From Hemiscyllium ocellatum (lineage: Eukaryota), in the NCBI RefSeq assembly GCF_020745735.1, contig NC_083409.1, positions 20,594,098-20,658,097 on the forward strand: a DNA stretch of 64,000 nucleotides, written 5' to 3'. Below the pieces are notes generated by a model. It worked only from the letters and a program-made list of their open reading frames with translations. It did not search any database and was not told the DNA's origin. Each line of letters opens with the position of its first letter. The first letter of the stretch is position 1. The position numbers were made by a program, and so were the translations under genes. This document shows positions 1,249 through 59,492 of the stretch, one piece after another.

Positions 1249-1436
1249 CATGATTTGAGCATGTCCTTCTCTGGAGGTCAAGACAGTTTCTGTAAATTCA
1301 CCATGGAGATGGTGCGACAATACGTGGAGGAGGAGGAGACGCGTGCACAGCACCAGGTGTCCCTCCTCAAACTGAGAGAACAAGCCATGCAGGAAAAGAC
1401 CAAAGCAGAGCTGGCCTGGTTGGAACACCAGAAAAA
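1249..1436 (+). CDS. CEP350/CCDC187-like exon (HDLSMSFSGGQDSFCKFTMEMVRQY...AELAWLEHQK)
   Basis: ttcag acceptor, gtgagt donor (phase 2); matches CEP350 FSGGQDSFSKFTMEMVRQY...AELAWLEHQKK. Confidence 0.93.
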
Positions 1437-1689
1437 GTGAGTAGCTGACCTATGCAGTGATGGTAAGCTGAATAGCCTTTCAAAAATGCAATGTAAGAAT
1501 GTGCAGATCCTTCCAGTAATCCTTTCCGGAGAAGGGGGAAAGCTAGTGTCTACTCTCATTGCAGTGAGGCTGTTGTGCAGAAGCTAGGTATTCACGTCAT
1601 CTTTCCCCTTATCACTGTTTGAATTGAGTAGAATGAAGCCAATTTTGATTTTTGTTTCAAATTTTTAAGTTTGTTCTTTGAACTTGGGA

Positions 1690-2480
1690 TGTTTGCGGTA
1701 ATGCTGGTATTTATTTGCTATCCCTCATTCTCGGAATGGTCATGGTGTTGAGCTGCCTTGAGCCACTGCAGTCTGCTTAGTCAATATAAATGTATCAACT
1801 CGCAAGTGCTGTTAGGTTTGGAGTTCAAGGCTCTGGAATAGATTGTTCCAAGACTGTTGTCCTCACCCACAGGTCAGGATTTTAAACAAATAATTTCATT
1901 AGACTTCTTCGCTGCTGTTAAGGCCAGTATTGTTGTCCATCCTTCATTGCACTTGGGAAGGTGATAGTGAGCCATTTCCTCAAACATCTGCAGTTCACCT
2001 GCTACAGGTACAACCACGATGCTGACAGGAAAGGAGTACCTGGGATTTTGATCCTATAGCAGTGAAGGAATGATGTATTCCTAAGTCAGGATGGTGTGTG
2101 GCTTGCAGAGGAGCTTACAAGTAATGGTGTTACCATGTTATCTACTACCTGTGTCCTTTTAGATGGTAGAGGTCACAGGCTTTGAAGATGCTATTGAAGG
2201 AATTGAGTGAGTTTCTGCAGTGCATCATATGGTGCACAAAGCTCTCACTGTAGCGAGTTGCTACATCCTATTTGGTGTTATGCATCTTGGGCATGTATTG
2301 GGGAGACAGAAAGTAAGTTACTTAGTGAAGAATTTTCAGCTTCTGACCTGGTTTTGTTGACCCAGTAGTGTATAGCTGATCCACTTCAGTTTCAGGTTGA
2401 GGGTAACTCTAATATGATAATTGTGAGGAAAGCAGTGATGATAATACCACTTCATATCAAAACGATTGCAAGAGATGGTC
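1690..2480 (-). mobile_element. L2/CR1-superclade LINE 3' fragments, old
   Basis: Same family as 19440 copy. Confidence 0.6.
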
Positions 2481-2795
2481 AATGGTTGGTCAGTATGGTG
2501 TGCATGCATCCATGCTTCCGTAATACTGTAGTCACGTATGCCATACTAGTTGTGGGCAAAAGATTTCTTTCAAAGTCCGTCCGTGAATTATTTGGGTTTT
2601 TCCGGCTGCTCAACATCTTTGTGGACAATTTTACTGACACCAACCTTTTATTTCCAGATTTTCTTTCAAAATATCCTTTTTAATTTTGTGAGCATAAACA
2701 CTGTCTTGTTGAAATAAAATTTCTTCAAATTGAGTATGACAAGCATGGAAGGGCATTACAGTTATAAAATATTAAGAAGACTTTGCTGTTTAACT

Positions 2796-3091
2796 GGCAC
2801 GGTGGCACAGTGGTTAGCATTGCTGCCTCACAGCGCCAGGGACCTGGGTTCAATTCCCGCCTCAGGCGACTGACTGTGTGGAGTTTGCACGTTCTCCCCG
2901 TGTCTGCGTGGGTTTCCTCCGGTGCTCCGGTTTCCTCCCACAGTCCAAAAATGTGCGGGTCAGGTGAATTGGCTATGCTAAATTGCCCGTAGTGTTAGGT
3001 AAGGGGTATGGGTGGGTTGCGCTTCGGCGGGTCGGTGTGGACTTGTTGGGCCGAAGGGCCTGTTTCCACACTGTAAGTAATCTAAAAAAAA
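2796..3091 (+). mobile_element. HE1-type tRNA-derived V-SINE, young
   Basis: GGCACGGTGGCACAGTGGTTAGC...GGTTCAATTCCC A/B boxes, V-domain, CR1-like tail. Confidence 0.9.
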
Positions 3092-3299
3092 TCTTAAACC
3101 CTGATCATTCTCTTTCTGGTTTAGTTGCTAATTCAGCAGTGGTGACACTGTGTGATCTACTTGGGCAGATTTACCCAAGTTTGTCTGTAAATTCCAGTAT
3201 CATTATACCATGTGGAGCGAACTGTGGTTTACTAAAGAAGTTGAATCTCTTGTCAAGAGGATGAAGAAAACTTATGTTAGGATAAGATGTGAAGCTCAG

Positions 3300-5185
3300 T
3301 CAGAGTGCTTGAGAGTTACGGGTTAGCCAGGAAAGACCAAAAGAGAGAGCTAAAAAGGGACATGAGAAATCACTGACAGATAGGATCAAGGAAAACCATC
3401 AAGTTTTCTATAAGTATATCAGGAAGAAAAGAATGATAAGAAAGTTTAGGGCCAATCAAGGATAGTTGTGGGATGTTGGACATGGAATCCGAGGAGATGG
3501 GGAAGCACTTAAAGAATATTTTTTGTCCATTTTTACACTGGAAAAAGACAGTGTTGTTAAGGAGAATACTGCGATGCAGGCTATTAGACTAGATGGGATT
3601 GAGGTTAACGAGGAGGTGTTAGCAATTTGAGAAAGTGTGAAAATAGATAAGTCCCCTGGGCCAGATGGGATTAATCCGAGGATTTTCTGAGAAGCCAGGG
3701 AGGAGATTGCAGAACCTTGACCTTTGATCTATATGTCGTCATTGTCTACAGGAACAGTGCTAGAAGACTAGAGGATAACAAATGTTGTCCCCTTGTTTGA
3801 GAAGGGGAGTAAAAACAACCCTGGTATTATAGACGAGTGAGCCTCATTCGGTTCTGCGTAAGATGTTGGAAAAGGTTATAAGAGGTAGGATTTATAATCA
3901 TCAAGAAGGGAATATGTTGATTAGGGATAGTCAACACAGTTTTGTGAAGGGTAGGTCGTGTCTCACAAACCCTATTGAGTTCTTTTGAGAAAGTGACCAA
4001 ACAGATGGATGAGGGTAAAGCAGTTGATGTGGTGTATATGGATTTCAGTAAGGCATTTGATAAATTTCCCACTGTAGGCTATTGCACAAAATACAGAGGC
4101 ATGGGAGTGAGGATGATTTAACTGTTTGGATCAGAAATTGGCTCGCTGAAAGAAGACAGAGTGTAGTAGCTAATGAGAAATGTTTATCCTGGAGTTCAAT
4201 AACGGGTGATGTAACGCAAGGATCTATTTTGGGTGCACTGCTGTTTGTCATTTTTGACTCAGATGAGGACATAGAATGATGGGTGAGTAAATTTGCAGAT
4301 GACAAGAAGGTCAGTGGAGTTGTGTATAATGCTGAAGGGTGTTGCAGGTTACAGAGGGACACAGATAAGCTGCAGAGCTGGGCTGAGAAGTGGCAAATGG
4401 AGTTTAATGCAGAAAAGTATGAGGTGATTCAGTTAGGAAGAAGCAACAAGAATAAGGAATACTGGGCTAACGGTAAGATTCTTGGTAGTGTAGATGAGCA
4501 GAGAGGTCTCGGTGTCCATGTATAGGTCCTTGAAAGTTGCCACCCAGCTTGATAGCATTGTTCCAAAGGCATAGGGTGTATTAGCTTTTATTGGTAGAGG
4601 GATTGAGTTTCAGAGCCACAAGGACATGTTGCAGCTGTACAAAACTCTGGTGTGGCCATACTTGGAGTATAGTGTACAGTTCTAGTCACTGCATTATAGA
4701 AAGGATGTGGAAGCTTTAGAAAGGGTTCAGAAGAGATTTACAAGGATGTTACCTGGTATGGAGGGAAGGTCTTATGAGGAAAGGCTGAGGGACTGACGGC
4801 TGTTTTCATTAGAAAGAAGAAGATAGAGAGGTGATTTAATTGTGACATATAAGATAATCAGAGGGTTAGATAGGGTGGACAGAGAGAGCCTTTTTTCCCA
4901 AATGGCGATGGCTAGCACAACGGGACATAGCTTTAAATTGCAGGAGGATGTACAGATGTCAGAGGTAATTTCTTTAGTCAGAGTGGTAGTGGTGTGGAAC
5001 ACACTGCCTGCAACAGTAGTGGACTCATCAACTTTCAGGGATTTTACATGCTCATTGGATAAACATATGGATGAAAATGGAATAGTGTAGGATAGATGGG
5101 GTTCAAATTGGTTCTACAGGTCAGTGCAACATTGATGGCCAAAGTGCCTGTAGTGTGCTGTAATGCTCTACGTTCTATGTTCATG
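3300..5185 (+). mobile_element. CR1-type LINE, 5'-truncated, decayed RT
   Basis: AVDVVYMDFSKAFDK, SKFADD, QMEFNAEK motifs; ttctatgt tail. Confidence 0.9.
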
Positions 5186-5210
5186 TGACTTTGCCATGTC
5201 CTCTAACCAG

Positions 5211-5298
5211 ATGCCTTCGAGACAATGGAGAAGATGACAAGATGCCGTCCATCCGTAAGAGGCAGCGTGGGCTTCTGCTCAGGCTGCAGCAGGAGCAG
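5211..5298 (+). CDS. CEP350/CCDC187-like exon (CLRDNGEDDKMPSIRKRQRGLLLRLQQEQ)
   Basis: aaccag acceptor, gtatga donor; phase fits previous exon; matches CEP350 LRDKGEDDKMPPLRKKQRGLLLRLQQEK. Confidence 0.93.
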
Positions 5299-6374: not shown

Positions 6375-6521
6375 GCTGAAATCAGGCATCTTCAAAGAGC
6401 CAACAAAGCTGCTCACAGGGAGAGGCAGCTGATCCTGAAACAGCAGGAGGAGATTCAACACATGCTCCAGTCCACCATGGAAATTCAGGAGAGGCTCAAA
6501 TCAGTTGGGGAGAGCAAGTTG
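6375..6521 (+). CDS. CEP350/CCDC187-like exon (AEIRHLQRANKAAHRERQLILKQQEEI...GESKL)
   Basis: cacag acceptor, gttagt donor, 147 bp phase 0-0; matches CEP350 AEIKRLQEANKAARKERQLILKQQEEI. Confidence 0.93.
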
Positions 6522-7364: not shown

Positions 7365-7552
7365 GTTCCAACTCGACAGGAGCAGCGGAATGCAGAACAA
7401 CCAGAAGTGCAGAATGTTTCCAAAGTGAGCCCCACTTCCACTCTCCTGGAAACAGATACGGAGACGTGGAGTCCCTCCTCTGTTTCGAATTCAGGCAGCG
7501 AGACCAGCAACATCATGCAAAAACAGAAGATGCGCAGTCATGTGGATGAAAA
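7365..7552 (+). CDS. CEP350/CCDC187-like exon (VPTRQEQ...GSETSNIMQKQKMRSHVDEK)
   Basis: tctcag acceptor, gtaata donor (phase 2); C-terminal part matches CEP350 SSETSSIMQKLKKMRSRMDEK. Confidence 0.9.
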
Positions 7553-9600: not shown

Positions 9601-10725
9601 ACATCAGATGGGTTTGTAATCTGTGGTTGGACTGTTAGGAAGGCAGTGCTTGAGATTCTCCCACTATCTAAGTCAGAAAGAGAAATGGAGCTGGGGTTGG
9701 TTTTGATGAGCTCTGTTGCCATTTGAAGTTAATGAATCCGAGCAGAAGGGGTTGTGTTGATGTAGAGGTGTAGAGAAGTTGGTTACAAATGTTTTGATTG
9801 AATATTTGTAATTTCTCCTTCATAATGTGAGGTTTTCTTGAGTATCTAAAGATAAAGCAATTTTGGGGAGATACTCAGCTGTTTTGTTTTTCTTGTTTTG
9901 CTCCATTATTTTGTAAACATCGCTCTCCTGACACTACTTCTTCTCTGGCTTTACGTCTCATCACTGGGCTTCTCTCAGTGTCTGTTTTTCCATCCTACAT
10001 CCCAAATTCCAGATGTACATCTACAACCAGCTGGTCAGGTACTGTGCATCCTCTGCTTCTCACTGATCGAGCATTCTCTGTTTCATCACATGCATGTGGA
10101 TGATGTGGGGGGAGGGTCAAGGGGAACGCAATTTTATAGAGAAATGTACATTCCTTTGACTTAGTTTTGGCTTCAAATAGATGCAGCAAGCTGGTAGTTG
10201 GCAATATACTGCAGACTTTATAATTAATCTGGAACGTGGTTTTATAGGGGCATTACTGTGAAAGCAAGAAGTTGAAGTTACACAAACAATCTTGAGCTGC
10301 TCATGCTAACAGGGTACAATAAAGATTGACCTGTTTTACGTTGAGTTGGACTTTTGCAAATTGTCTGGCAGAGTTAGCAGCCCACTAACCTTGATAAATG
10401 TAACTTTAAGAAATCTGAAATTTGAGTTGCAAGGTTGAATTTTCATAAGGCAGTGCTTCTTTAAGAGGGCAAATGTGTCTTTGGTGAACATTTGAGGTAT
10501 TCTTATGGATATGAAAACTTAATTGGTATGTAACCGTCACAGTAGACATGAGTATCTCCAACTACATGCAGCTACATGTTGGCTGTACTACATTCCTGAA
10601 TGAAATTCACCCAAAATTAGTGAAATAATTGAAAAGTATTGCAGAATTAGAAGTGTAAATTATGTTTGTTGTGTGAATGTTGTAATATTGGAAAGCTAAT
10701 AGTAACTAGCACATTCTCCCAAGTT

Positions 10726-11017: not shown

Positions 11018-11072
11018 GAATTAACTACCACTGGAACTTTGTAATAATTATGCTAGTGTAAAGCTTTAAAGA

Positions 11073-13929: not shown

Positions 13930-14126
13930 GTTCCTCACTAAACGGGAGCAGAAACTAATGCATCGGCGACGGCGTGCGGAGGAGCTGCTGGAGTGGAAGC
14001 GGCGGCTCGATGCCGAGGAAGCTGCGATCCAGCAAATGGAAGAACAGGCTCAGGCTGCTTGGGACAAGCAGCTCAAAACAAACATGATAAAGAGAGAGAC
14101 AAGCAAGAAGATTCCCGAATTGAACG
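13930..14126 (+). CDS. CEP350/CCDC187-like exon (FLTKREQKLMHRRRRAEELLEWKRRLDAEEA...)
   Basis: catcag acceptor, gtaatg donor (phase 1); matches CEP350 FLTKREQKLMQRRQHAEELLEWKRRLDAEEA. Confidence 0.94.
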
Positions 14127-14964: not shown

Positions 14965-15167
14965 ACACAGGCAGTGAGGAAGAATGTCCTGTGCCGCCTT
15001 GCTCCCAGCCCCACAGGGACAGTTCAGTTCCTGAGGAAGTTAGAATTTCACCTGCTCAGTCACTGGAATCACCATCAGCAGCCCTTCGGATGACCACCAG
15101 TCCTGACCATCCTATTTTCACGGATGGTGTTTATTCCCAGGATTTTGTCACAACACACAGTAAAATG
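14965..15167 (+). CDS. CEP350/CCDC187-like exon (DTGSEEECPVP...SPDHPIFTDGVYSQDF); 3' end 15159 or 15167
   Basis: ctgtag acceptor in correct phase; resembles CEP350 SEEESPVP...SPDHSIL...CSQE; two gtaaaa donors at 15160 and 15168. Confidence 0.8.
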
Positions 15168-15289
15168 GTAAAAGATGTTTTGCATTGTCTTTTTAACAAA
15201 AACTGTTTCTAATGAGTAAAGAATGTCATATAAGGCTGCAGAGAATAGCAAATCCTTGGCTTTGCTCAAAATCAGTCCCAGGGAAACAG

Positions 15290-15570
15290 GAAGTGGAGAG
15301 AATGGGAAACAGTATGAGGAGGGGGGTGGGAGATCTGAGGGAATGGAAGTTCTGAGAATGAATGGAAAATATAAGTGTGGGGGGAATGGGAATTCTGAGT
15401 GGGGTTGGGAAACATGGGAGTGGGATGAAATGGAAATTCTGAGAGGGAATTTGAAACGGGAGTGGCAGAGAATGGGAATTCTGAGGGGGAATGAGAAATG
15501 TAATGTGGGAAAGAATAGGAATTTTGTGAAGGCATGGGAAATATGTGCGGGCTCGGTGGATTAACAATGG
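15290..15570. repeat. Purine-rich degenerate tandem repeat (gaatgggaattctgag-like)
   Basis: Motif recurs about five times. Confidence 0.7.
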
Positions 15571-16907
15571 GAAATCCAGGTGGGGGAGGGGGCTCTGGGT
15601 GGGCTGGTCCTCAGGGGGTTGATGTGGACTTAAAAGCCCAAATGACCTGCTCCGACACTTTACGGAATCTCTGATTATCTGTCTCTGTCCCACCTCCGTT
15701 CTTCCACTGCAGAAACCTCGTCAATGTCTGTCTTACTTCCAGACTTGATGATTGTATTATACTACTTGTTCTATTCCAGAAAGCCGATTGGTGAAGGATA
15801 ATACCAGAACCAGTCTTTGCACCATTTAAATTAATTTATATGATTATATATTGCAGGCAAGCTATTTGTATTCCTTTAATTAAATCTTTGCGAATTTCAC
15901 TTTCAATTGCTCCATTAATGGAAAAGCCTTCAGTTACTAAGACAGTGACCTCTTTAATCCCCTCCCTGAACTTTACTTCTGTCTATGTCACTTTCCTCCT
16001 ACAAGACACTCGAACTGTATGACAGATTTCACATCTGCCCTTGGATCTCTGTGAGGCTCAGTATCATGTTTTATTCTATTTCTGTGAAGCTACTTGATTT
16101 GTTTTATCATATGAAAGATTTGTTATAAATGCAAGTTTTTAAAGATAAAACAGGAAGAAAACAGGTAACTGTGAAATAAAGCATCAGAGCAGATTTCAAA
16201 AGTGATGACTGTGCTTAAAAAAGCCTCAACTTTCAGATGTGGAGGTATGATGGGTGGGTACATGCACTTTTTTAAAAAAAAACATTTGACAACGTGTCAT
16301 ACATGAGATTAATTGGCAAGGAATTAAGGCAGGGATAGCAAACGGGATTTAAACAGATAAACGGTGGAAATATAGAAAAGGACTTGGGGAAGTTCCAGAG
16401 TGGTTCAAGAAAGTCGTGGTTTCTGGCTTTGCTTCTGGGGGCACTTTTATTTCCGGTGTTCATTTCATAATTTGATTATGTGCTAAGAGCGTGTGGTGTT
16501 GAAATTCAAAGTATTGTAAAATAAGAAGAATGATGAGTGTTTTGGAAAAGTTAAGGAAGCTGTGAGGGGTTTTGAGAAGAAGCTTAAAAAGGAGTAGAAA
16601 GCTTTTGTTTTCACTCCATCAAGTAAATTTTGTATTGAGTTTGAGTACTCAGTCTTAAAAAATATACTGTTTAATGATCTGGATCTCACTCCATGTGGAA
16701 ACCTTGACTTTCATTACATGGCTGAGAATAAATTGGAAATGAATTCCAGCCTGTGTCTGATTTGTCAGACATATTCTGAGATATAAAACAAAGGTTGTCG
16801 TTTGTTTGTCTCCTGTTTTCATGCTTTGATTTCACAGTTTATTAAAACCATGTATTGTTCATTAATGTTTTGAAATGAATTCCATCATTTTTGTTCCTGA
16901 CCTTCAG

Positions 16908-17185
16908 TATCTAGATTGACCAACAGTATGTGTACTTTGCAACAGGGCAGCCCAGTGCAGGAGCCCCAGTCCCGAAAAGATGTGCCCCGAAAAATCCAAG
17001 GGGAAATTAACTTTGCTTTTGCTGAAGATGCAGTCGAGATTGTGACACTGGTTCATGGAGCGGCTGAGGAGCTGTACAAATGGCAGGAACTTGGCCATGA
17101 TTTGGGGGATTTGCAAATACCCCCAGACTTTGTGAATTATAAATGGAAGGATGATGAGAGTGTCAGCAGAAGAGCTTATTGTGAG
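16908..17185 (+). CDS. CEP350/CCDC187-like exon (...EIVTLVHGAAEELYKWQELGHDL...SVSRRAYCE); 5' end uncertain
   Basis: ccttcag acceptor, gtgaga donor; matches CEP350 EVEILVHNAAEELWKWKELGHDL...STSKRVYKQ. Confidence 0.85.
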
Positions 17186-18947: not shown

Positions 18948-19094
18948 CTTATCTTTAATGTGACAAGGGAAATCTTTGCTGACATCTTTTCTGATGACCT
19001 CCATGCCAGCCCAGCCCCGTGGATGAAGCCAAGCCAAATTAGCTCTTTGTTCTTCAAACGAGCGAGGAACCCACAGAATTTAAATGAAGTGAAG
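18948..19094 (+). CDS. CEP350/CCDC187-like exon (LIFNVTREIFADIF...PWMKPSQI...NLNEVK)
   Basis: ttccag acceptor, gtaata donor, 147 bp; matches CEP350 AVFDLTKEIFEEIF...VWMKPCRI...NLDEIK. Confidence 0.92.
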
Positions 19095-20135: not shown

Positions 20136-20139
20136 CTTA

Positions 20140-21140
20140 GAGTCGTAGAGATGGACAGCTCAGAAACAGACCCTTCGGTTCAACTTGTCCATACAGACCA
20201 GTTATCCGAGATAAAATCTAGTCCCATTTGCCAGCATTTGGTCCATTTCCTCTTTAACCCTTCCTATTCATATACACCACCAGATGCCTTTTAAATATCG
20301 CCATTATGCCAGCTGCCTCCACTTCCTCTGGCAACTCATTCCATGTACACACCACCCCCTGCATGAAACAGTAACCTGTTACGTACCTTTTAAATGTTTC
20401 CCTCTCACCTATGCCCTCTATTTTTGGAATTGCCTTCACCAGGGAAAAGACTTGTCTATTTACCCTGTCCATACCACTCATAATTTTATAAATCTTTTCA
20501 CATTCGCCTCTCAGCCTCTGGTGCTCCAGGGAATGTAACCCCAACCAATTCATTCTCTTCCTATACCAGAACCCCCCCACCCAGGCAACACCCTTGTAAA
20601 TCTTTGCATAACCCTTTCAAGATTCACAACATCCTTCCAAGAGCAGGGAGTCCAGAATTGCACAGAATATTCTAAAAGAGGCCTGATCAGTGTCCTATTC
20701 AGCTGCAACATGACCTCCCAACTCCTGTACTCAATGCTCTGACCAATAAAGGCAAACATACCAAACACCACCTTCACTATCCTGTTTACTTGTGACTCCA
20801 CTTTCAAGGAACTATGAACCTGCACTCCAAGGTCTCTTTGCTCAGCAACACTCCCCAGGACTTTACCATTGAGTGTATAAGTCCTGCCCTTATTTGCCTT
20901 TCCAAAATGCAGCACCTCACATTTATGTAAACTAAACTTCATCTGCCACTCCTCAGCCCATCTGAACAAGATCCTGTTGTATTCTGAACCTTCTTCACTG
21001 TCCACTGCACCTTCAATTTTGGTGTTATCTGCAAACTTACTAACCATACTATGTTCCATGTTCACATCCAAATCATTTATGTAAATGACGAAAAGCAGTG
21101 AACCCAGCACCGATCCTTGTGGCACACCACTGGTCACAGG
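20140..21140 (-). mobile_element. CR1-type LINE 3' ~1 kb
   Basis: ORF 20550-21137: VTSGVPQGSVLGSLLFVIYINDLD...SKFADNTK. Confidence 0.92.
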
Positions 21141-34915: not shown

Positions 34916-34924
34916 GGTCCCTGC

Positions 34925-37975: not shown

Positions 37976-37983
37976 GGGCAGCA

Positions 37984-41716: not shown

Positions 41717-41837
41717 GTTCCACAGTTTAATGAAGAGTCCAGAAGATTATAGCTTTGGGTTATTTCCCGATCTCATTGTTGCTGTCTACAAGGCTGTGAA
41801 GGACACAGAGTGGAAGAAGTACTTTCCAAAAGAATAG
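41717..41837 (+). pseudogene. RNASEL: RNase L-like pseudogene: terminal exon (FHSLMKSPEDYSFGLFPDLIVAVYKAVKDTEWKKYFPKE*)
   Basis: tttcag acceptor in the phase required by the 36146 donor; aligns with remembered [31 protein letters not shown]; frame open to TAG. Confidence 0.85.
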
Positions 41838-46146: not shown

Positions 46147-46279
46147 GCCATCTCACTGAGGCGCCATTTCAGACTGAACTGTTTTTCATTCATGATTTGA
46201 GACGATTAAAGCCAAATCTTCAATTCCCATCACAAAGCCCATTCTCTATCCATCACTCAGAGACAAATACCTCAGAGAC

Positions 46280-46790
46280 ACCGACAGAGAGCACAGAGTA
46301 ACACATTCACACTCAATGAGATACTGACAGGCAGTACAGAATAACACACACACTCAGAGAGATATCTACAGGCAACACTGAGTAACACACACTCAGAGTG
46401 CCAGGCAGCACTCAGTAACACACACACTCAGAATGCCAGGCAGCACTGAGTAACACACACACTGAGAGTGCCAGGCAGCACTGAGTAACAAGGCAAAAGT
46501 GAGGACTGCAGATGCTGGAGCTTAGAGTCGAGAGCGTGGTACTGGAAAAGCACAGCAGGTCAGACAGCATCTGAGCAGCAGCAAAATCAACGCTTTAGAC
46601 ATCGTGATGAAGGAATTCTCCTGATGAAGGCATTGATTCTCCTGCTCCTCGGATGTTGCCTGACCTGCTATGCTTTTCCACCACCACACTCTGAGTACTG
46701 AGTAACATGCTCACAGTCCATGCTGCCTGGAGGTGTCTCTCTGAGTGTGAACATGTTACTCAGTGCTGCATGTTGATGTCTCTGAATAAC
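46280..46790. repeat. 32-35-bp minisatellite (cactgagtaacacacactcagagtgccaggcag) with one inverted unit
   Basis: Unit starts at 46377, 46409, 46444, 46479; inverted copy ~46730-46780. Confidence 0.75.
46491..46696. mobile_element. Related hairpin element in a minisatellite, 11-bp TSD
   Basis: Inverted arms, CCTGATGAAGG remnant; ACTGAGTAACA at 46480-46490 and 46697-46707. Confidence 0.7.
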
Positions 46791-47775: not shown

Positions 47776-48104
47776 CTACACACATTCTGATCTCCTTATG
47801 CTCTTGCTGAGGGGAGAGGGGAGGGTCACGTGGGTGAGGGCACAGGAGAAGCGAGCGTTGGACTCCCAGTCAGACCCAGAGAGGGTCAGCAGGCTGCTGA
47901 CACTGTAGGTGCTGTCCGAAGCTCGCAGGTAGTTGCTGGTCTGAACCCCGTCCGAAATGACTGCACCGTCCTTCTTCCACTGCACCTCCAGCTCATCGGG
48001 ATAGAAGTGATTGGCAAGGCACACCAGGGTGGCAGTGCCCTTGGCATTGACCTGCTCCAGGGAGGGGGGCAGCAGGGTCAGCTTGGGCTGAGAGTTCTCA
48101 CGGC
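47776..48104 (-). pseudogene. Ig light-chain constant exon, shark type I/NS5 (sigma-cart) class; ORF intact, splice acceptor mutated
   Basis: RENSQPKLTLLPPSLEQVNAKGTATLVCLANHFYPDELEVQWKKDG...YSVSSLLTL...FSCALTH...SECV*; pyrimidine tract ends tttctG|GC (TG instead of AG). Confidence 0.93.
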
Positions 48105-48779
48105 CAGAAAGACAAAAGAAACAATTTTAATCCCTGCCATTTGAAGAAACTTCAACTCTCAGAACATTCACTGGTAAAATGTTTGAACATTTGTATCCAA
48201 TACCTACCAAACCCGACAAAAAAAAACAAGTATTGTTTAAATTGTTTCTTGGGAGTGAGTGTCACGAGCAGGGCCAGCATTTATTTCTCATCCGTAATTG
48301 CCCTGAAAAGGTGATGGGGAAAGACAAGGAACAGTTTTGGACTCTTGTTTAGGAAATGAATGTGGGCAGCTGGAAGGGCTCTCAATGGGGGACCAGTTTA
48401 GTGACAGTGATCAGAACTCAGTGAGATTGAGAGTAGGGATGGAAATGGAGAACCATGCAGCAAGTGTTAACGTTTTCACTTGGGAATGAATTATTTTACT
48501 AAACTGTGCGATAATTTAGTAAAAGTGGACTGGAACCAACGCCATCATGTGAAATCAGTGTCAGGGCAGTGGGATCCCTCAAAAGAAAAGACAGAGATTG
48601 TTCAGAATCTGTTCCCACAATGAGTAAGGGTGGGACTCCCTAATCTAGACTCTCAGCCTGGGATGTCAAAAGGCAGCCAGAGTAGGGAAGACCAAACAGG
48701 GAAGGTGATGTTGGTTATCTGGAGTTATCTGCAGAAAGCCCAGAGGAGGATTGGAAATGCAGGGGTGGCATTGAACAGG

Positions 48780-51510
48780 ATCTGAGGAAGGCAAAGACAG
48801 GATTAACTATGTCCAACTAAATCAAAGAAATCCCAACAAACAAGAGGATTGGGGTCATGTACTGACATGGATTGAGAACTGGTTGGCAGACAGGACAGGA
48901 AGAGCGAGTCTTTTTCTGAATGGCAGATATTTCCCAGTTGGGGTACCACAGGGATCAGTCCTTGGTACCCAGTTATTCATATTTAATAATAGAGTCAGAG
49001 TCAGAGCGACCCAAAAGGCCCAACGGATCATTGTGTCAAAAAACAACTCAATACTTCTCATCAATTTACCAGCATGAGGGAATTAGATGCGGTATGTGTT
49101 CAAGAAGGAATTAGATACAGTTCTTAAGATTAATGAGTTCAAAGAATGTGGGGAGCAAGCAGGAACAGGGGACAGTGTTGCCTGATCGGCCATGATCATA
49201 TTGAATGGTGGAGCAGGCCTGAGGGGCCGAATGGCCTACTGCTGCTCCTGTGTTTAATATTTCTCAGATAATGAAGGAATGTCTCTCGTCAGCTTGAGGC
49301 TGGAAGTCAGATGTGTGTGGAGGTGGAAGATGTGGCCATGGTGATTAATGAATGCAGGTCAGTGAGGTGGTTCAGAAGACACATGGGATAAACAGTTTTT
49401 CTTTTTCCATTGACAGAATGAGGGCATTGCTGGATCGGCAGCATTTATTGCCCATCCCTAATCTCCAGAGGGCATTTTAGAGTCAACTACATTGCTGGGG
49501 GTCTGGTGTCACATGGTAAAGATGACAGTTTCCTTCCCTAAAGGGCATTAGGAAATCAGATGGCTTTTTCCTGACAATCAACGATGGTTTCATGGTCATC
49601 TTAGATTCTTAATTCCAGATTTTTTTATTGAATTCAAATTCCACCATCTGCTGTGGCAGGATTCTAACCCGGGTCCCCAGAATATTATCTGGATCTCTGG
49701 ATTAACAGTTCAGCAATAATACTATTAGACCATCACCTCCCTTGTCTCCTTTTTGGTTGAGAGCGAAAGCAAGAAATTTGTTTATTCTGGAACTGTATAA
49801 AACCCCAGTTAGGGCGCAGTGAGAGAACAGTGTACTGTTCTGGTCACCACATTACAGGAAGGATATGTTCCCCCTAGTGATGGGGACAGTGGAGGATTTT
49901 GTCAGGAATGGGGAGTTTTAGCTTTGAGGAATGATTGGTTTGGCTGGGACTGTTTTCTTTGGAACAGAGAAGGCTGAGGGGAGATTTGATCAAGGCGTGT
50001 AAAATGATGAGGGCCGAGATGGAAATCAGTCCTTCCTGCCAATTCTATCAGCAGAGAGGGCAATAACCATGGGGAGAGATTGAAATGAATTGGGGACAGG
50101 GTTCGGGGGGAATTGAGGAGTAATTGTTTTCACCCAGAGGCTGATGGGATCTGGGACTCACTGTCTGAAAGGGTGGGAGAGGCAGAAACCCTCATCACAT
50201 TGATAAAACACTTCGATATTCACTTAGAACATCAAAACCTCCAGAGCTATGGAGCAAGAGCTAAAAAGTGGGATGGAGCTCGATCCCTCTTTAACAAACC
50301 TCGGATTACCCACAGATGAGGAGAACTTTATCCGAGAACATTGGAGCAGACTTGGATCCAAACATTTCAGGAAGGAGTCACATTGGGGTGTCTGTGTAGA
50401 ATGTTCCAGAATACATTTCAAACCTTGCTGCACACCACACTGGGCTGAGATCAAGGGTGAAGCTGCAAAGAGTCTCAGTGTCCCGGGGTCAGGCAGGGTC
50501 ACTGCTCCTAATGACCACATGCCTCCTGGAAGGTGAGAGTGCGCAGACAATGGGAGAGGTTCAGGATCAGGAGACTCTAACCTTAAAGAAAGACCTGCAT
50601 TTGTGTAGCACCTGTCCCCAACTCAGGATGTCCCAATGGCTCTTTCCAGCAGACTTTGCACAATGAGATCCCAAACACAGTATGATAATTAGCAGAGAAA
50701 TAGATTTTTAGTGATTTTTATTGGGGGATAAATATTGACCAGGACACCAGAAGGAACTGCCTGCTCTTCATCCAACAGTGCCATGGAATGGCACCTTTCA
50801 CATCCGAAAGACTCCCAGTTCAATCAAAAAAAAATGTTCCTTGAAAGTGAAGTTGCAGGTAGGTAGGGGAGTGACGAAGTAACTTGGGATGGTTTCCTTT
50901 ATTGGGCAGTGCATTGAGTATTGGAGTTGGGAACTGTTGTGGTTGTGTCAGACATTGGTTAGGTCACTTTTGGAATACGGTGTGTAATTCTGGTTTCCCT
51001 GCTGTAGGAAAAATATTGTGAACCTTAAAATGCTTCAGAAAAGTTTTATAAGGGTGTTGCCAAAGTTGGAGAGTTTGAGCTATCGGAGGAAGATGAATAG
51101 ACTGAGACTATTTTCCCTGGATTGTTGGAGGCTGAGGGGTGACCACACAGTGGTTTATAAAATCTTGAGGGGAATAGATATGGTGAATAGAGTAGATCTT
51201 TTCTTCAGAGTTGGGGAGTCCAGAACTAGAGGGCATAGATTGAACGTGACAGAAGAAAGATTTAAAAGGGACCTTAAGATGCAGTGTTTTCATGTAGAGG
51301 GTGGTGCATTTTTGGAATGAGCTGCCAGAGGGAGTGGTGGGGCTGGTATGATTACAATATTTAAAAAGCCATCTGGATGGGTATATGAATAGGAAGGGTT
51401 GAGAGCGACATGGGCCTCATGCTGGCAAATGGGACTAGATTAATTTAGGGTATCTGGTCAGGATGGATGACTTGGACTGAAGGGTCAGTTTCCGTGCTGT
51501 ACATCTCCAT
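48780..51510 (+). mobile_element. Cluster of CR1 3' fragments and SINE pieces in the J-C intron
   Basis: GVPQGSVLG, RLRGDHTVVYKIL motifs. Confidence 0.75.
50585..50830 (-). mobile_element. Deu-domain SINE (SacSINE1-like)
   Basis: ggataaatattgaccaggacacc...ctgctcttc...agtgccatgg. Confidence 0.65.
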
Positions 51511-51539
51511 AACTGTAATTGTATTTCAATCGAGCCCCT

Positions 51540-51715
51540 AACACCTCAGGCTCTCCCAAAGTCATTTACATTTTGTTCTAAAACAAGTCACTGTTGCAAT
51601 GTCAGGAAAGGGACAGCCAGTTTCTTCACAGCAAGATCCCACTAGAAGCAATGAGGTCAAAGAGCATTCTTCACGATGTTGGTCCACGGATAAATATTGT
51701 CCTGAACTCAACCCA
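51540..51715 (-). mobile_element. Deu-domain SINE fragment
   Basis: cacagcaagatcccac...ggataaatattg. Confidence 0.6.
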
Positions 51716-51849
51716 AAGAGAAAGGAATTTGGTTCAGTTGGATGGAAAATGAGAAAATGGAAGGTAAAGGAGAAGGTAGGATTGCTGGTTACGGATGGGA
51801 TTGATTGTTATCAGAAAATAAAAGGAAGGGATACAATTTTTGAGTATTA

Positions 51850-54800
51850 AAGGAACCGTAAAAGTGCAGGGAAAATCAATGATAGAACAAACTTAAAGGG
51901 TTTGTATCTAAATGCACGAAGCATTCCGAGTAAGGTAGACAAAGTGATGCCATAAATCGAGGTAAATTGAGTTTCCAAGGAATTTAAACTAGTTAAAGTG
52001 GAGGAGGGCTCCAGAGAGGTTATTCAAGTTTCTATAAGACATACTACAACAGAGAGTACAGAAAGGAACAAGAGTCGAGCATCAAGCACAGCAGATAAGA
52101 GGATAATGATGAGAAGGAAGGCAGTCAATGCAGGGCTGAATGTGTTGTACATAAAAGCACACAGTATACGCAATGAGCTGGTAGTGCAGATTGAATCTGG
52201 CAGGTACGATGTCGTGGGTATCACAGAGACATGGATGTAAGGGGATCTGGGCTGGGAACTAAATATCCAAGAATACATGTCCTATGAAAAGGAGAGGTAG
52301 ATGGGTTGACGGGCAAGAGTTGCCTTGTTAGTACGAAATTAAATTAAATCAAAGCAAGAAGTGATTTTGAGTCAGAAGGTGTAGAATCTGTGTGGGTAGA
52401 GTTGAGGAACCGCCAGAAATGAAGAATCTGATGCAAGTTATGTCCAGGTCTCCAAGCAGTAATCAGGGTGTGGGGAAGGAAATCAATCAGGAGACAGAAA
52501 AGCCGCATACAAAATGTCAGGGCAGACTTCAATGGATAGGTGGACTGGGTAGCGCGTCTCAAGATAAAAATTTCATGGATGTCTACGAGATGGTTTTTGG
52601 AGCAGCTTGTGGTTGAGCCATTATGGAACAGGCAGGTCTGGATTCAGTTATGTGGAATGAGGCAAACTTAATTAATGAGCTGAAGGTTAAAGTATCCCTC
52701 TGGATAAGTGACCATAATATGATAGAAATCCGGCTGTAGTTTGAGAGGGAGAAGCTGCAATCAGATGGATCAGTATTTCAGTTGAGTAAAGGTAACGACA
52801 AAGACATGAGGAAGGAGCTGGCCAGAGTTGATTGGAAGGGGAGCCACGCAGGTAAAATGGTGGGGCAGCAAACAGCAGAGTTTCTGGTGGTAATTCAGGA
52901 AGCAGAGTAGGAATTCATCCCAAAAAAGAAGAAACATACTAAGGGGAGGACAAGGCAACCATGGCTGGTGAGGGAAGTCACGGACAGCATAAAAGCAAAA
53001 GAAAAAAACACGCAATGTGATAGAGAAAAGTGGGAAGCCAGAGGGTTAAAAGCCTTTAAAAACCTGGAGAGGATAAATAAAAAAGCATTAAAGGTGGAGA
53101 GGGGGAAATGTGGGGGTAAGTTAGCCAGTAATACAAAAGAAGATTGCACGAGTTTTATCAGATGTATAAAAAGCAAGAGGAAGACAAAAATAGACATTGG
53201 ATCGCCGGAAAATGAGGCTGGAGAAAGTATTATAGGAAGTGAAGAAATAGCAGAGGAATTGAATCAAAGCTGAAAGGTTGAATGTGGATAAATCACCCAG
53301 ACTAGATGAACTACATGAGTGTGTTCTGAAGGAGATCACTGAGTAAATTATGGAGGTATTGGAGATGATCTTTCAGGAATCAATGGAGTCAGGGTATGAC
53401 AGTGTGGTGGGCAGGGATTTGATGGGGGCAAGGGACTGGAAAGTGGCTCACATAGCAGCCCTGTTTAAGAAGGAAGGGAGGGAGGGAGGGAGAAGATGGG
53501 AAATTATTGGCCAGTTAGCCTGGACTCAGTTGTTGGTAAGGGTTTAGACTTCAATTTAAGGATGAAATTGCAGAGGACTTGGAGGTGCAAGTGTAAACTA
53601 GGGCTTCATCAAGGGGAGGTCATGCCTGGCAAATCTGTTAGAATTCTTTGAGAACGCAATGAGCCATTCACACAAAGGAGAGTCAAAGGAAGTAATGTAT
53701 TTGGATTTCTAGAAGGCTTTTGACATTAGATAAGAGCATAAAGTGTGAGGGCCGAGGCACTGGCATGGACTGAGGACTGGCAGGTTGGCATAAAGCAGAG
53801 AGTGAGGACAAATGGCCGTTGGTGACTGGTAGAGTCATGTAGGGGTCAATATTGGGACCTTAATATTCACGTTATACATTAACAATCTGGATGAAGGAAG
53901 TGAAGACATTGTTGCTAAGTTTGCAGGTGACATGAGATAGGTGGAGGGACAGATAGTGTTGAGGAAGTGGGAAGGCTCTAAAAGGTCCTGGATCGACTCG
54001 GAGAGTGGGCAAAGAAGTGGCAGATAGAATATAATGTGTGACAGTATGAGGGTATGCACTTTGGGAGGAAGAAGAGATGCAAAGACTGTTTACTAAATAA
54101 GAAAAGCTTTTGGAAATCTAAAGCACGAACCTCATTCAGGTTTCTCTTCAGGTTAACAGGCAGGTCCAGTTTGTGCTTGGGAAGGCAAATGAAATGATAG
54201 CATTCATTTCAATAGGGCCAGAATACAAGAGCAGAGATGTACTGCTGAGGCTGTGTAAGGCTCTGGTCAGACTGCATTTGGAATATTGTGGACAGATTTT
54301 GGATCCATATTCTAAGAAACCATGGGCTGGCATTGGAGGGGTTTACAAGAATGATCCAGGCGATGAAGGACTTATCATATCAGGCGTGCTCGGGGACTCT
54401 GGGTCTGTACTCGCTGGAGTTTAGAAGGATGAGGAGGGATCTTATTGAAATTTACAGAATACTGATAGGCCTTTTTAGAGTGGATGGGGAGAAGATGTTT
54501 CCAAAAACAGGAGAGACTCGGTAACTAAGGCACAGCCTCAGAATGAAGGGCCAGCCCTTTCGAGCTGAAATGAGGAGGAATTTCTTCAGCCAGAGGGTGG
54601 TGAATCTGTGGAACTCATTGTTACAGAGGGCAGTGGAAGCCAAGTCACTGAGTGTATTTAAGACAGAGATAGATAGGTTCGTGAGAGTTAAGGGGATCGA
54701 ACGTTCCTGTGGAGTAGGCAGGAGAATGGGGTTGAGAAGCATATCTGCCAAGATCAAATGGCAGAGCAGATTCAATGGGCTGAATGGCTGATTTCTGCTC
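51850..54800 (+). mobile_element. CR1-type LINE, endonuclease to 3' end, decayed
   Basis: LNARSI / YDVVGITETW endonuclease motifs, RT motifs, CR1 tail. Confidence 0.9.
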
Positions 54801-54829
54801 CTATTTCTTAAAGTCTTCTGGAGAGTTTC

Positions 54830-57280
54830 CCCAAAACCCTGGAACACTGAACCCAGTGGACTGTGAGCCCTACTGGAGCTGTTTGTCATCAGAACTTTGC
54901 CAAGAGATGATCAAAGGGTGAAGAGAGTGTGCATTTAGGTGGGAACTTCAGAATGCTTCCTAGCTCCTGGAATACCATAAGTGCAGGAAATGTGGTCAGT
55001 GACAGCAGTTGGAACTCCGGGTTCCGGAGCTTGACCAGTAGCTGGTGTCAGTGCGGAGCGTCCGTGAGGCTGAGAGCTCCGTGGAGAACATGTTTCTATA
55101 CGTGGTCACTCTACAGTTTCAGAATATGCAGGGAGAGAGGGAATGGGGGAGCAATAGACAGTCCAAAAGGACCAGGCAGGTAGTAGAGGAATCCCCTGAG
55201 TGCATCACACACTCCAACTGGGATTCAGTTCAGAATCCTGATGAGAATGATGATTCATCTCTGATGTGCAGCCAGAGCCAAGTCCCTGGCACCAAGGTGG
55301 AGGGTTCCGCTGTACGGGGGGGCACAAGGAAGAAGGATAGCGAGAGGAGATTCAAGAGTGAGGGCAATCGATAGGTGTTTCTGCAGTTATAGATGGGAAT
55401 CCAGGATGGTGTGTTGTCCCTCTGGTGCCAGGGTCAAGGATGTCTCTGAGCGGCTGCAGAGCACCCTGAGGGGAGAGGGGGAACAGTCAGCAGTCATGGT
55501 CAACATCAGTGCCAATGACAGAGGGAGGAAAGGGATGTGGTCCTGCATTCAGAATTTAGGGGGCTCTGGAGGGAATGAGCACTGGGAGCTCAAAAGTTGG
55601 AATCTCCGGATTGCTCCCAGTGCCCGATCCAAGTGAGAATAGGAACAGGAGGATAACACAGGTGAATGTGAAGCTTGAAAGAGGATCCAGGTTGGAGGAC
55701 TTTAGATTCTTGGGACATTGAGACGGGGTCTGGGGGAGATGGGACCTGGACAGACCAGACAGTGTTGTTCCTGAACCGAGCTGGGACTGAGTTCCTTTGG
55801 GGTGATTTACTAGTGCTGTTGGCGAGGGTTTAAACTAACTTGGCAGGTCTGTGGGAGCCAGGAGGGAATAACAGAGAGGAACACCAAGGACCACAGAATC
55901 TTCACTGCAGTCAATAAGTCACCACCCAATGGGAAGGATGCAGAGGAATACAAATGCAAGGAATTTGCAGATACTTGCAAATGCGATAGAGTCATTATAA
56001 ATGGCTCTTTAATTTTTGAATATAGACTGGGGTAATAGCAATGTAACAGGCAGGAGGGGCCAGAATTGTGAAAGTATGTTCAGATAAATTTTCAGGTGGC
56101 ATTGTGGCCAGTGAAGAAGGCTGTCTAAGAGTACAATGGGATCTTGACCAACTGGGCCAGTGGGCTGAGGAATAGCAGATGGAGTTTAATTCAATAAATG
56201 TGAGTGCTGTACTTTGCAAAGCCAAACCAGGGCAGGACTATTACGGTTAATGGTAGGGACCCGTGGAGTGTTGCTCAACAAAGCAACATGGGCGGCACGG
56301 TGGCACAGTGGTTAACACTGCTGTCTCACAGCGCCTGAGACCCGGGTTCAATTCCCGACTCAGGCGACTGACTGTGTGGAGTTTGCACGTTCTCCCCGTG
56401 TCTGCGTGGGTTTCCTCCCACAGTCCAAAGATGTGCTGGTCAGGTGAATTGGCCATGCGAAATTGCCCGTAGTGTTAGGTAAGGGGCAAATGTAGGGTAT
56501 GGGTGGGTTGCGCTTCGGCAGGTCGGTGTGGACTTGTTGGGCCGAAGGGCCTGTTTCCGCACTGTAAGTAATCTAATCTAAAGAGAGCGAGGGGTGAAGG
56601 TGCAGGTGCATTATTCCTTGACAGTGGAGTCACAGGTAGACAGGGAGATGAAGAAGGTGTTGGGTATGCTTATTTTTATTGGTCACTGCATTGAGTATAG
56701 GAGTTGTGACATCATGTTGCAGCTGTACAGCAGTTGGTGAGGCCACTTTCGGAATAATGTGAACAATTCTGATCATCCTGAGATAGGAAGGATGTTGTTA
56801 AACTTAAAAGGCAGCGGAAAAGATTTACAAGGATGTGGCCAGGAATTGGAGAGTTTCAGCTTGTCGGGAGAGGCTGAAGAAATGGGCCTATTTTCCCTGC
56901 AGCGTCTAAGGCCTCGGGGTGACCTTATGGATGTGCAGAAAATCATGAAGGGCATGGACAAGGTGTATATCCAAGGTCTTTTCCTTGGTTAGGGGAGTCC
57001 AAAACAAGAGGGCATAGGTTTAAGGTGAGAGGCAAAAGATTCAAAAGGGACCCGAGCGGTAACTTGTCACACAGAGGGTGGTATGTGTCTGGATCGAGCT
57101 GCTAGAGAAAGCGTCGGAGGCGGATAAAATTACAACATTGGGATGGGAACATGGATAGGAAGGGTTTAGAGGGATGTAAGCCAAATGCTGGCAAATGGGA
57201 TGAGGTCATTTAGGAGATCTGGTTAACTCAGGCAAGTTGGACTGTAATGTCTGTTTCCACGCTGTATGACTCCATGACTA
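54830..57280 (+). mobile_element. CR1-type LINE retaining ORF1 esterase, with a large internal ORF2 deletion
   Basis: RMVCCPSGARVKDVSERLQSTLRGEGEQSAVMVNISAND (SGNH-esterase-like); jump from endonuclease to RT C-terminus near 56095. Confidence 0.82.
56290..56580 (+). mobile_element. HE1-type SINE, young, nested in a CR1
   Basis: Near-identical to 23252 copy; interrupts CR1 RT sequence. Confidence 0.9.
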
Positions 57281-57900
57281 TGAGGGGCTGGAAAAGCTGA
57301 GACTGTTTTCCCTCAAGTGTAAGAGTCTGAGGGGTGACAATACAGAGGTTAATAAAATCATGAGGGACATAGATAATGTGAATCATTCAGGAAGCAGGTG
57401 AAATTTTGTAGAAATGGCAAAAAATGTTCCCAAAGATCATTCCAGGGGTGAGGAATATCAGTTATTAAGATAGTTTGGAGAATTTGGGACTGACTTCTTT
57501 GGAGAAGGCTGAGAGGAGATTTCTTCGAGGAATTAAAATCCGGAGGGGCCTGGATACAGTAAATTGGAAGAAAATGTTCCCAATTGAGAAAGGATTGAGA
57601 CTGAGAGACCACAGATTGAAGGCAATTGGGAAAAGTCACAAAAGTGAGATGGGGAACAACATTTTGGCCAGTGAGTGGTTAAGGTGTGGAGTGCACTGCC
57701 TGATAGTGTGGTGGAGGCAACTTCAATTAAAACATTCCGAAGGGAATGAGACTGATATTTGAAAAGCAACAATGTTCAGGGTGACAGGGAGGAGGCAGGA
57801 GAATGACACTCAGTGAATTGCTCATTCGGAGAGCCAGTTCAGACAGGATGGGCAGAATGGCCTCCTCGTGCAATGTGACAATTCTGTGATTATGTGATTG
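57280..57900 (+). mobile_element. CR1 3' fragments
   Basis: RT C-terminal and tail sequence. Confidence 0.7.
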
Positions 57901-58316
57901 AGCAGAGTTAAAGCTGGGGGAGGTAGGAGCTCGGTGTCTTACTGTGCTGCTGCTGAGGTCAGTGGGATCAGAGACTGGGACAGGGAGCCAGAGCTCACAT
58001 TAAAATCTGCCCTGTGTCTGTCACACGGAGAGTGGCAGGAGGCTACTCACTGATTTCATTCCATGCTGCAGGAATGGGACCACAGGCTGCAAATGGACAG
58101 AGCTCCTCCACACGGTGAGTAAAACTTACTGACTTATATCTTGCTTTTTAATGGGGTTATAGGACTAAAGAAATACAGGTGTACACCGTATGGGATGCAG
58201 TGTTCCTCAATCAAACATTTCCATCACTGCAACACTTCAACAATTCAGTATTTGTGTTTTATAAATTGTATTTCAGTATTGACAGGGTTAATAACAGAGG
58301 ATTGAGGTTTACTTAC

Positions 58317-58351
58317 TCAGTCTGAGCTTGGTTCCATTACAGAACGTAAGC
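58317..58351 (-). pseudogene. Ig light-chain J segment (LTFCNGTKLRL), FGxG motif altered
   Basis: 35 bp between heptamer and gtaagt donor; FCNG in place of FGxG. Confidence 0.92.
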
Positions 58352-58390
58352 CACAGTGAGAGCTCCCAGTGCAGAGGCTGTACAAAAACC
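58352..58390 (-). other. J recombination signal sequence, 23-bp spacer, perfect consensus
   Basis: + strand CACAGTG (58352-58358), 23 bp, ACAAAAACC (58382-58390). Confidence 0.97.
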
Positions 58391-58784
58391 TCAGCTCTCT
58401 GCTTCCCTCCATCACTCTCAACCGCTCCTTCTCTCTCTCTCTGTCTCTTACTTAGTCTCACCCTCTCCCTGCCCTCCCTCTGTCTCTCTCGGTAGTGTTC
58501 AGCTGGGCTTGTGCAGTTTGTGAACTTTATTTTTCGATGTTAAATCTTGCAGCTGCCCTTCACATGTGGCCATGGAATGCAAGAGGGAAACTTGAGGCCT
58601 TCAGTGAGCGGTGGACACCACAGGGACTGGAGTGTGTCATGTACAGTGACAATCCCGGTATGGGGTAATTTGTTCAATTTCATTTACATATAACTGTGGA
58701 TGTGTCAGTGCAGGAGGTGGAACTGTGTATATGTCACAAAAATGTGGAATGTGGTAGTACAGGTGGTGGTGCTGTGCATATTGA

Positions 58785-58812
58785 GATTTTTGGATGGCTC
58801 TGTATCACCGTT
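58785..58812 (-). other. V recombination signal sequence, 12-bp spacer, degenerate
   Basis: - strand AACGGTG / ATACAGAGCCAT / CCAAAAATC; two mismatches each in heptamer and nonamer, including the first C of CAC. Confidence 0.88.
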
Positions 58813-59100
58813 AAGGCCAGCTGTAATGCTGCTGACAGTCATAGTCAGCAACATTCTCATTCTGAATGTTGCTGATTGTCAGGGTGAAACTGGTCCCTGA
58901 TCCACTGCCGGTGAATTGCTCGGAGACTCCTGTGAGTTGAGTTGCTGCATTGTAGATCGGGAGAGAGGGTTTCTGACCTTCTCGCTACTGGTACCAAGCA
59001 AGGTAGCTGCTCATGGCCGTACAGATGATGGTTACGGTTTGTCCCAGTCCGACTGACAGCAGTGGGGGAGACTGGGTCATGATGATGTCCTCACTGATAC
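58813..59100 (-). pseudogene. Ig light-chain V exon, type I/NS5 class, premature stop
   Basis: [48 protein letters not shown]...[34 protein letters not shown]; TAG at 58985-58987; CDR1 about 3 codons short; ccctcag acceptor. Confidence 0.95.
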
Positions 59101-59286
59101 CTGAGGGCTCAGAGAGAAACACAGTGAAGTCAGAACTTTCACAGAAAGAGCCTGTCAAATGAGAGATTGTTGGAGACACTGAGCATTCCTCTGGTTTCAG
59201 CATTTTCCCTTCAATCACAAGTCAGTGGAATTGGAGTGAAATGGAGAGCAGCGAAAGATTCAAGGTGGAAGGAGAGAGATTTGTAC

Positions 59287-59335
59287 CTGCGACACAGAAT
59301 TCCAGGGGCCAGATCAGCTGGATGTGCGAAATCAT
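59287..59335 (-). pseudogene. Ig light-chain leader exon (MISHIQLIWPLEFCVAG)
   Basis: ATG at 59335, 49 bp, gtacaa donor in phase 1 matching V acceptor; 186-bp intron. Confidence 0.9.
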
Positions 59336-59395
59336 GGTGTGTGCTCCTGTCCCTGTGCCTGGTACCTGATAAACTCTCCCTTCACTGGGCTCTGC

Positions 59396-59492
59396 TTTAT
59401 AAAGCTGCAGCCTGTGAGAGTCTGACTGGGTGTTCCTCAGTATGTAAATGGCATCAGGCAGAGACAACCACGTCAGCCCCTCACACTTCCTC
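59396..59492 (-). promoter_or_regulatory. V-gene promoter: TATA, octamer variant, CRE-like and Ets/PU.1 motifs
   Basis: TTTATAAA 59396-59403; ATTTACAT 59442-59449 (consensus ATTTGCAT); TGACGTGG 59468-59475; GAGGAAGTG 59484-59492. Confidence 0.7.

Follow-up and report, generated by a model that had tools for sequence, protein, structure and literature searches.

We examined a stretch of 64,000 nucleotides from the genome of the shark Hemiscyllium ocellatum (assembly GCF_020745735.1, contig NC_083409.1, positions 20,594,098 to 20,658,097), which we call the window and number from its first nucleotide. It holds the 3' part of a copy of CEP350, the last two coding exons of an RNase L gene, and an immunoglobulin (Ig) light-chain minicluster with one variable (V), one joining (J), and one constant (C) segment. 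Our conclusion is that the window is probably one unit of a lineage-specific segmental duplication by which the array of kappa (type III) light-chain miniclusters grew in a hemiscylliid shark, with pieces of other genes carried along as passengers. To judge from their sequences, all three neighbors are secondary copies, and none of them is ancestral. The adjacency of the three is secondary because the CEP350 copy is young and all that is left of RNase L is its two terminal exons.

To locate these elements, we translated the window from stop to stop in all six frames and tested the relevant pieces with Pfam, with the sequences of solved structures (PDB), with protein searches, and with local tblastn. 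An earlier reading of the letters alone (the original prediction) had placed three loci within 60 kb, and all three (the CEP350-derived exons, the RNase L KEN-domain exons, and the light-chain minicluster) are present where it put them, far above chance. Eleven CEP350-derived exons and the two RNase L exons lie on the plus strand, and the minicluster lies on the minus strand (Table 1). The RNase L stop codon (41835-41837) faces the stop codon of the C exon (47776-47778), with 5.9 kb between them, so the two immune pieces are tail to tail on opposing strands, as predicted. The prediction also held that both are dead, and we could read the lesions in the RNase L exons and in the V exon, its recombination signal sequence (RSS), the J segment, and the acceptor of the C exon.

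The CEP350 copy and its age

The window's 11 tblastn segments are collinear with elasmobranch CEP350 (E values down to 5e-31 against CEP350 from Narcine bancroftii), and the last exon of the copy ends at the natural CEP350 stop codon (26159-26161). When we searched 1.84 billion representative sequences with this last exon, the best full-length matches were the CEP350 proteins of many vertebrates (76-79% identity). With both the conserved C-terminal exon and the collinear coiled-coil exons in place, the copy is clearly derived from CEP350.

It is not the CEP350 orthologue. An orthologue should encode the whole protein, which is about 3,100-3,300 residues long and contains a CAP-Gly domain, and the window copy does not. 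Compared to the H. ocellatum isoforms, its exons cover residues ~1656-2040 and then ~3067-3289; a single 1.8-kb intron stands where ~1,026 codons, the CAP-Gly region among them, have been lost. The candidate splice sites of this junction intron (donors gt after 15167 and gt after 15176, acceptor ag before 16946) are all in phase 0. Pfam found no CAP_GLY domain in the translated pieces of the window, and it did find one in the product of the real H. ocellatum CEP350, which is a separate 130-kb gene on a 116.5-Mb record and encodes 3,289 residues. The original prediction of a CEP350-family gene needs a correction: this is an internally deleted duplicate. It resembles CEP350 in that its exons are collinear, its introns are kept, and the highly conserved last exon is present, but it differs in the missing codons, in its divergence from the gene of the same species, and in its very long branch, and it is a young paralogue.

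How young is it? Over about 600 aligned residues, the window copy and H. ocellatum CEP350 share only 75% identity; over the same alignment columns, the CEP350 orthologues of Hemiscyllium and Chiloscyllium are 96% identical. We built a maximum-likelihood tree of CEP350 (19 sequences, 556 columns, LG+C20+F+G4 model). The copy falls inside the clade formed by Hemiscyllium and Chiloscyllium CEP350 (support 100/100), as the sister of H. ocellatum CEP350 (93/90). Its branch is 0.38 long, as compared to 0.02 for the parent, or about 19 times longer, so the copy sits beside the gene of its own species but does not have the branch length of an orthologue. We also compared alternative placements with the approximately unbiased (AU) test. 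The test rejected an origin earlier than the divergence from Stegostoma and Rhincodon, which would put the copy outside the four orectolobiform CEP350s (p=0.002), and did not reject one that predates the split of Hemiscyllium and Chiloscyllium (p=0.09). As far as the tree can tell, then, the CEP350 piece arose within the hemiscylliid sharks, a single family. The long branch is a caveat to this placement, yet the clade is fully supported and the AU test agrees with it.

This result bears on a specific suggestion in the original prediction, which was that the first gene might be CCDC187, the paralogue in human 9q34, and that the RNase L remnant would then represent a second, ohnologous RNase L lineage. 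The resemblance to CCDC187 is superficial: the copy lacks the CAP-Gly middle and is hence shorter than CEP350. Against it, the exons match residues 1656-2040 of CEP350 as well as its C-terminus, and for the last exon, identity is 89% with H. ocellatum CEP350 versus 54% with an amphibian relative of ~1,260 residues that has no known name. Furthermore, because the copy is nested within hemiscylliid CEP350 and the AU test rejects an older origin, CCDC187 or any other ohnologue from the two rounds of whole-genome duplication is excluded, and with it the second RNase L lineage. (No protein named CCDC187 surfaced in our cluster look-ups, so this exclusion comes from the CEP350 tree, which has no named CCDC187 in it.) On the sequence evidence, the first gene is a young, lineage-specific duplicate of CEP350, and the CCDC187 account is almost certainly wrong.

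Short fragments of the CEP350 last exon also occur on contigs of unrelated vertebrates; there we found no kappa or RNase L pieces alongside them. Within an intron of the window copy, at 20553-21185 on the minus strand, there is a reverse-transcriptase fragment (RVT_1, E = 4e-11) of a long interspersed element (LINE).

The RNase L tail and the kappa minicluster

Among all solved structures, the two RNase L exons matched only RNase L (pig, 4o1o, and human, 4oau). Exon A corresponds to residues ~616-668 of the protein and exon B to residues 667-711, so they encode adjacent stretches. The Pfam matches to Ribonuc_2-5A are weak: exon A scores 17.4 bits (E = 0.0049) and exon B scores 14.3 bits (E = 0.046), each singly under the cut-off of 23.3 bits, and only positions 42-78 and 96-125 of the 127 in the profile are covered. 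The splice phases agree, as the codon that the intron interrupts has its first two bases in exon A and its third in exon B. Although each match is weak, we find the identification convincing because the two exons are on the same strand, in the right order, consecutive in the protein, and matched in phase. The intron between them is 5.6 kb long. Because this intron was kept, the piece is a copy of the 3' end of the gene that was made at the DNA level and not a processed pseudogene.

What had been described as an RNase L-like gene is therefore RNase L in identity, but it comprises just the last two exons and is not a gene. The ankyrin remnants that were reported with it were not found, either by Pfam or by a crude scan for the ankyrin-repeat consensus. 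Specifically, there was no Pfam match to Ank or Pkinase among the plus-strand pieces of at least 45 residues between 26.2 and 36 kb, nor among those of at least 22 residues (mostly at least 29) between 33.7 and 41.6 kb. What remains does not have an open frame with usable splice sites: exon A has an in-frame TAG codon and its acceptor reads CG. In Callorhinchus milii, a cartilaginous fish, RNase L is functional (PMC10400998). The window piece corresponds to the last two KEN exons of such a gene and keeps the arginine and the histidine of the FIRNL..H motif, but the ankyrin repeats, the pseudokinase, and the beginning of the KEN domain are missing, and it has the in-frame stop and the damaged acceptor.

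The minicluster on the other strand has the layout of a shark kappa locus. There is a split leader; the V segment has a 12-spacer RSS and the J segment a 23-spacer RSS; V and J are about 460 bp apart; and there is one J and one C. Upstream of the leader are a TATA-like box (at about 59401) and the octamer ATTTACAT (59449-59442, minus strand). This octamer is one mismatch away from ATTTGCAT, which could be a further lesion of a dead cluster or a tolerated variant.

Both domains are closest to kappa. The V exon starts with DIIMTQSP, which is a framework region 1 of the DIxMTQSP type, and its best matches are kappa V domains. It is 64% identical to the V region of a light-chain model from Scyliorhinus torazame (P0228), its complementarity-determining region 1 is three residues shorter than in its relatives, and the Pfam V-set match is weak and confined to the 3' half. 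The best single-domain match of the C exon is to human kappa C (85.9 bits, versus 71.7 bits for lambda), the exon is 85% identical to a shark light-chain protein that resembles a complementary DNA product (P0225), and its end, R-S-E-C-V, resembles the R-G-E-C of kappa. In the nomenclature for sharks, kappa is type III or NS4, and type I is sigma-2 or sigma-cart (PMC5192425). The original prediction had labeled the cluster type I. Judged by sequence similarity, the light chain is kappa (type III) and not type I, since the nearest relatives that we found are all kappa-like; this comparison is one-sided in that it included no named sigma-2 reference.

A protein search with the C exon returned four matches. 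Two of them, P0225 and P0226 (79% identity), are shark light-chain fragments that public databases list as bacterial (Aeromonas veronii and Salmonella enterica). Contamination of the bacterial assemblies is likely.

From its sequence, this cluster would be unable to rearrange and be expressed. In the V exon, framework region 2 is interrupted by an in-frame TAG (58987-58985) and the usual DYYC has become DYDC; the heptamer of its RSS is AACGGTG. In the J segment, the FGxG motif reads FCNG (compare FTFGKGTKLRL in P0225). At its 5' edge, the C exon lacks an AG acceptor, as the intron ends in ...ctttctg. The J-C intron (48127-58316) spans 10.2 kb and contains retroelement pieces, such as LINE-like open frames on the plus strand at about 52.9-55.7 kb. 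Thus, the minicluster shares its split leader, its V-J distance, its RSS geometry, and its closest relatives with the kappa miniclusters of other sharks, but it differs from them in being dead and in having a J-C intron that was stretched by retroelements.

The spacer that separates RNase L from kappa C contains a tandem array (46274-46490) with units of 35 or 41 bases, 4.5-4.9 copies, and 77-83% matches.

Origin of the arrangement

The history that we favor would run as follows. A founder kappa cluster would once have stood directly beside an intact RNase L gene. The duplicated unit would consist of the kappa V-J-C minicluster together with fragments of two ordinary genes. One fragment is the end of RNase L, which points tail to tail at kappa C; the other is a copy of CEP350 that has its introns but not the ~1,026 internal codons. 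As they stand in the window, both immune pieces are dead, and the frame of the CEP350 copy is still open and spliceable. The original prediction had mentioned, as a fallback, a co-duplicated cassette of RNase L and Ig light chain that is decaying, and this is the account that we prefer: both immune pieces are fragmentary or dead and their CEP350 neighbor is a young duplicate. Arrays of amplified light-chain genes in sharks that contain passenger fragments are a known type of arrangement, to which the window adds an example. Like the passengers in other segmental duplications, these are partial, intron-containing copies of neighboring genes that lie beside a member of an amplified family, and such passengers decay; but here the frame of the CEP350 passenger is far better kept than neutral decay would leave it, and the repetition of the unit is something that we infer.

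We also considered retroposition as the origin of both passengers. We rejected it because both have kept their introns.

Several observations weigh against the segmental-duplication reading. First, the CEP350 copy is not decaying as a passenger should. Its spliced frame has 586 codons and not one stop before the natural stop codon. We simulated neutral evolution by random substitution up to the observed protein divergence of 24.7%; the simulated frames had 8.7 stops on average, and none of the 500 was free of stops. The label of passenger debris may therefore be wrong for the CEP350 component. Second, a self-comparison of the window found no second copy of any CEP350, RNase L, or kappa exon inside it. 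Third, sequencing runs from a second species hold a share of 0.23 of the sampled 31-letter words from the spacer between RNase L and kappa, and because at least 24% of this spacer is interspersed repeat, that share may reflect transposons only. Finally, the unit in the window may be either a copy or the founder of the amplicon.

The first of these points could mean that the CEP350 copy, short as it is, functions as a new gene, one of a selected family of paralogues without CAP-Gly, and that the immune pieces are mere neighbors. Besides the open frame at 25% protein divergence and the outcome of the simulations, this account draws on the splice sites, as all 10 exon junctions (including the one over the deletion) have in-phase GT-AG pairs, and on the insertions and deletions relative to the parent, every one of which is in frame. 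On the other hand, the branch of the copy, at about 19 times that of its parent, is in keeping with a strong relaxation of constraint. The last exon was not clearly present in any RNA run: in the runs that we guessed to be RNA, we found only small shares of its words (up to 0.12). The 5' part of the gene lies outside the window, so only the integrity of the 3' frame is seen. What the open frame implies, as far as sequence can indicate, is that it would have been kept open either by selection or by frequent gene conversion among copies, and gene conversion among many copies could do so without function. We consider a working gene unlikely. If the open frame holds across copies, then a structural centrosome gene would have given rise to a shortened and amplified family of paralogues.

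The main inference of the original prediction was quite different: that the light-chain gene and RNase L beside CEP350 are directly and anciently linked, as the remains of a primordial immune block located on a 1q25-type paralogon of the major histocompatibility complex (MHC). Human CEP350 and RNASEL do both lie in 1q25, in a region that is usually counted as MHC-paralogous, and this favors the idea. Human IGK, which is at 2p11, does not. The tail-to-tail cassette of RNase L and kappa C does imply that a kappa cluster once stood beside the real RNase L gene. However, a primordial block requires that the linked genes be ancestral, and what we found was a young CEP350 duplicate, a two-exon tail of RNase L, and a dead kappa cluster. 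As the CEP350 piece arose within the hemiscylliids, it cannot have stood next to the RNase L and kappa pieces before that family existed. Nor does the window contain any of the anchor genes of 1q25. With one neighbor datable to a single family of sharks and all of them secondary, the adjacency seen here is therefore no relic of a primordial immune block. The window leaves the prediction's central claim unsupported, and ancient linkage strikes us as improbable.

There is a precedent for antigen-receptor loci in such regions. In sharks, the Ig heavy chain genes and some of the light-chain genes lie near T cell receptor alpha/delta, and a lambda cluster lies in the MHC paralogue on chromosome 9 (PMC12227049). 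The same paper calls the genomic distribution of the miniclusters "not well known" and mentions neither the location of kappa nor chromosome 1. The window is similar to those loci in that a light-chain locus shares a chromosome with genes whose human orthologues sit in 1q25, but the case for the reported loci was built on marker genes whose synteny is conserved in several species, whereas the neighbors in the window are young duplicates in one species with no markers. Our literature search for kappa beside RNASEL or CEP350 in sharks found no paper.

A more ambitious version of the duplication account is that the kappa array of hemiscylliids, or perhaps of all sharks, was seeded beside the real RNASEL gene in the region orthologous to 1q25, and that the CEP350 copies without CAP-Gly are perhaps a selected new family. 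We regard this combination as rather improbable. If it were true, then kappa would be a further light-chain isotype in an MHC-paralogous region, as has been reported for lambda on the chromosome-9 paralogue.

Could the three pieces have been joined by an error in the assembly? The region is rich in repeats and would belong to a multi-copy array, which is where assemblies most often fail. But of the words sampled from the spacer between RNase L and kappa, about half are found in H. ocellatum sequencing runs from one study and about half in those from another, and within each part the intron phases and the order of the exons are coherent. A misjoin is very improbable.

If the window is a unit of a segmental duplication, then the RNase L tail and the deletion junction of CEP350 are scars that the copies would share, and they could help to trace the course and timing of the expansion of the kappa array and the site of its founder cluster. 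The window also suggests caution about synteny: the neighbors of genes in multi-copy antigen-receptor arrays can be young passenger fragments, and adjacency in such arrays carries no information on ancient linkage unless the partners prove to be the ancestral genes.

Features and other contents of the window

Table 1. Location of the CEP350, RNase L, and kappa light-chain features, with the evidence for each. Positions are those of the window; minus-strand features are listed with the lower coordinate first unless given in reading order.
Feature	Positions	Strand	Evidence and details
CEP350 copy (3' part of an internally deleted duplicate)	1234-26161	+	tblastn against Narcine and Hemiscyllium CEP350; the gene extends upstream beyond the window
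CEP350 copy, exons 1-6	1234-1436, 5211-5298, 6375-6521, 7365-7552, 9979-10038, 13930-14126	+	tblastn
CEP350 copy, exons 7-11	14965-15167, 16946-17185, 18948-19094, 22874-22996, 25997-26161 (stop included)	+	tblastn
CEP350 copy, intron at the deletion junction	15168-16945	+	1778 nt; joins parent residue ~2040 to ~3067
RNase L KEN exon A (penultimate coding exon)	36022-36146	+	PDB matches to RNase L only; Pfam Ribonuc_2-5A profile positions 42-78; in-frame TAG at 36139-36141; acceptor CG, not AG
RNase L KEN exon B (last coding exon)	41717-41837	+	PDB matches to pig and human RNase L (residues 675-711 and 667-698); Pfam Ribonuc_2-5A positions 96-125 of 127; stop TAG at 41835-41837
Kappa C exon	47776-48104	-	Open frame ending in RSECV and a stop; Pfam C1-set, E = 8.8e-22
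J segment with 23-spacer RSS	58317-58390	-	Nonamer GGTTTTTGT at 58390-58382; heptamer CACTGTG at 58358-58352; coding part 58351-58317; GTAAGT donor
Kappa V exon with 12-spacer RSS	58785-59100 (V 59100-58814; RSS 58812-58785)	-	Direct reading; best solved relatives are kappa V domains
Kappa leader exon	59287-59335	-	ATG at 59335-59333; 82% identical to the leader of the Scyliorhinus torazame light-chain model (P0228)

The window has a G+C content of ~42-48% and consists of vertebrate DNA that is packed with the debris of LINEs and short interspersed elements (SINEs). A Pfam scan of the translated pieces found no further genes in it, apart from reverse-transcriptase debris. One stop-to-stop piece, which is not among the ten longest and whose place in the window is not fixed, matched SNAPC3 in Pfam (E = 1.5e-4) and might be a small pseudogene fragment or a chance match. 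Tail fragments of LINEs of a similar kind, with the motif LERVQ...RMLPG...YKIM, occur at about a dozen places on both strands.

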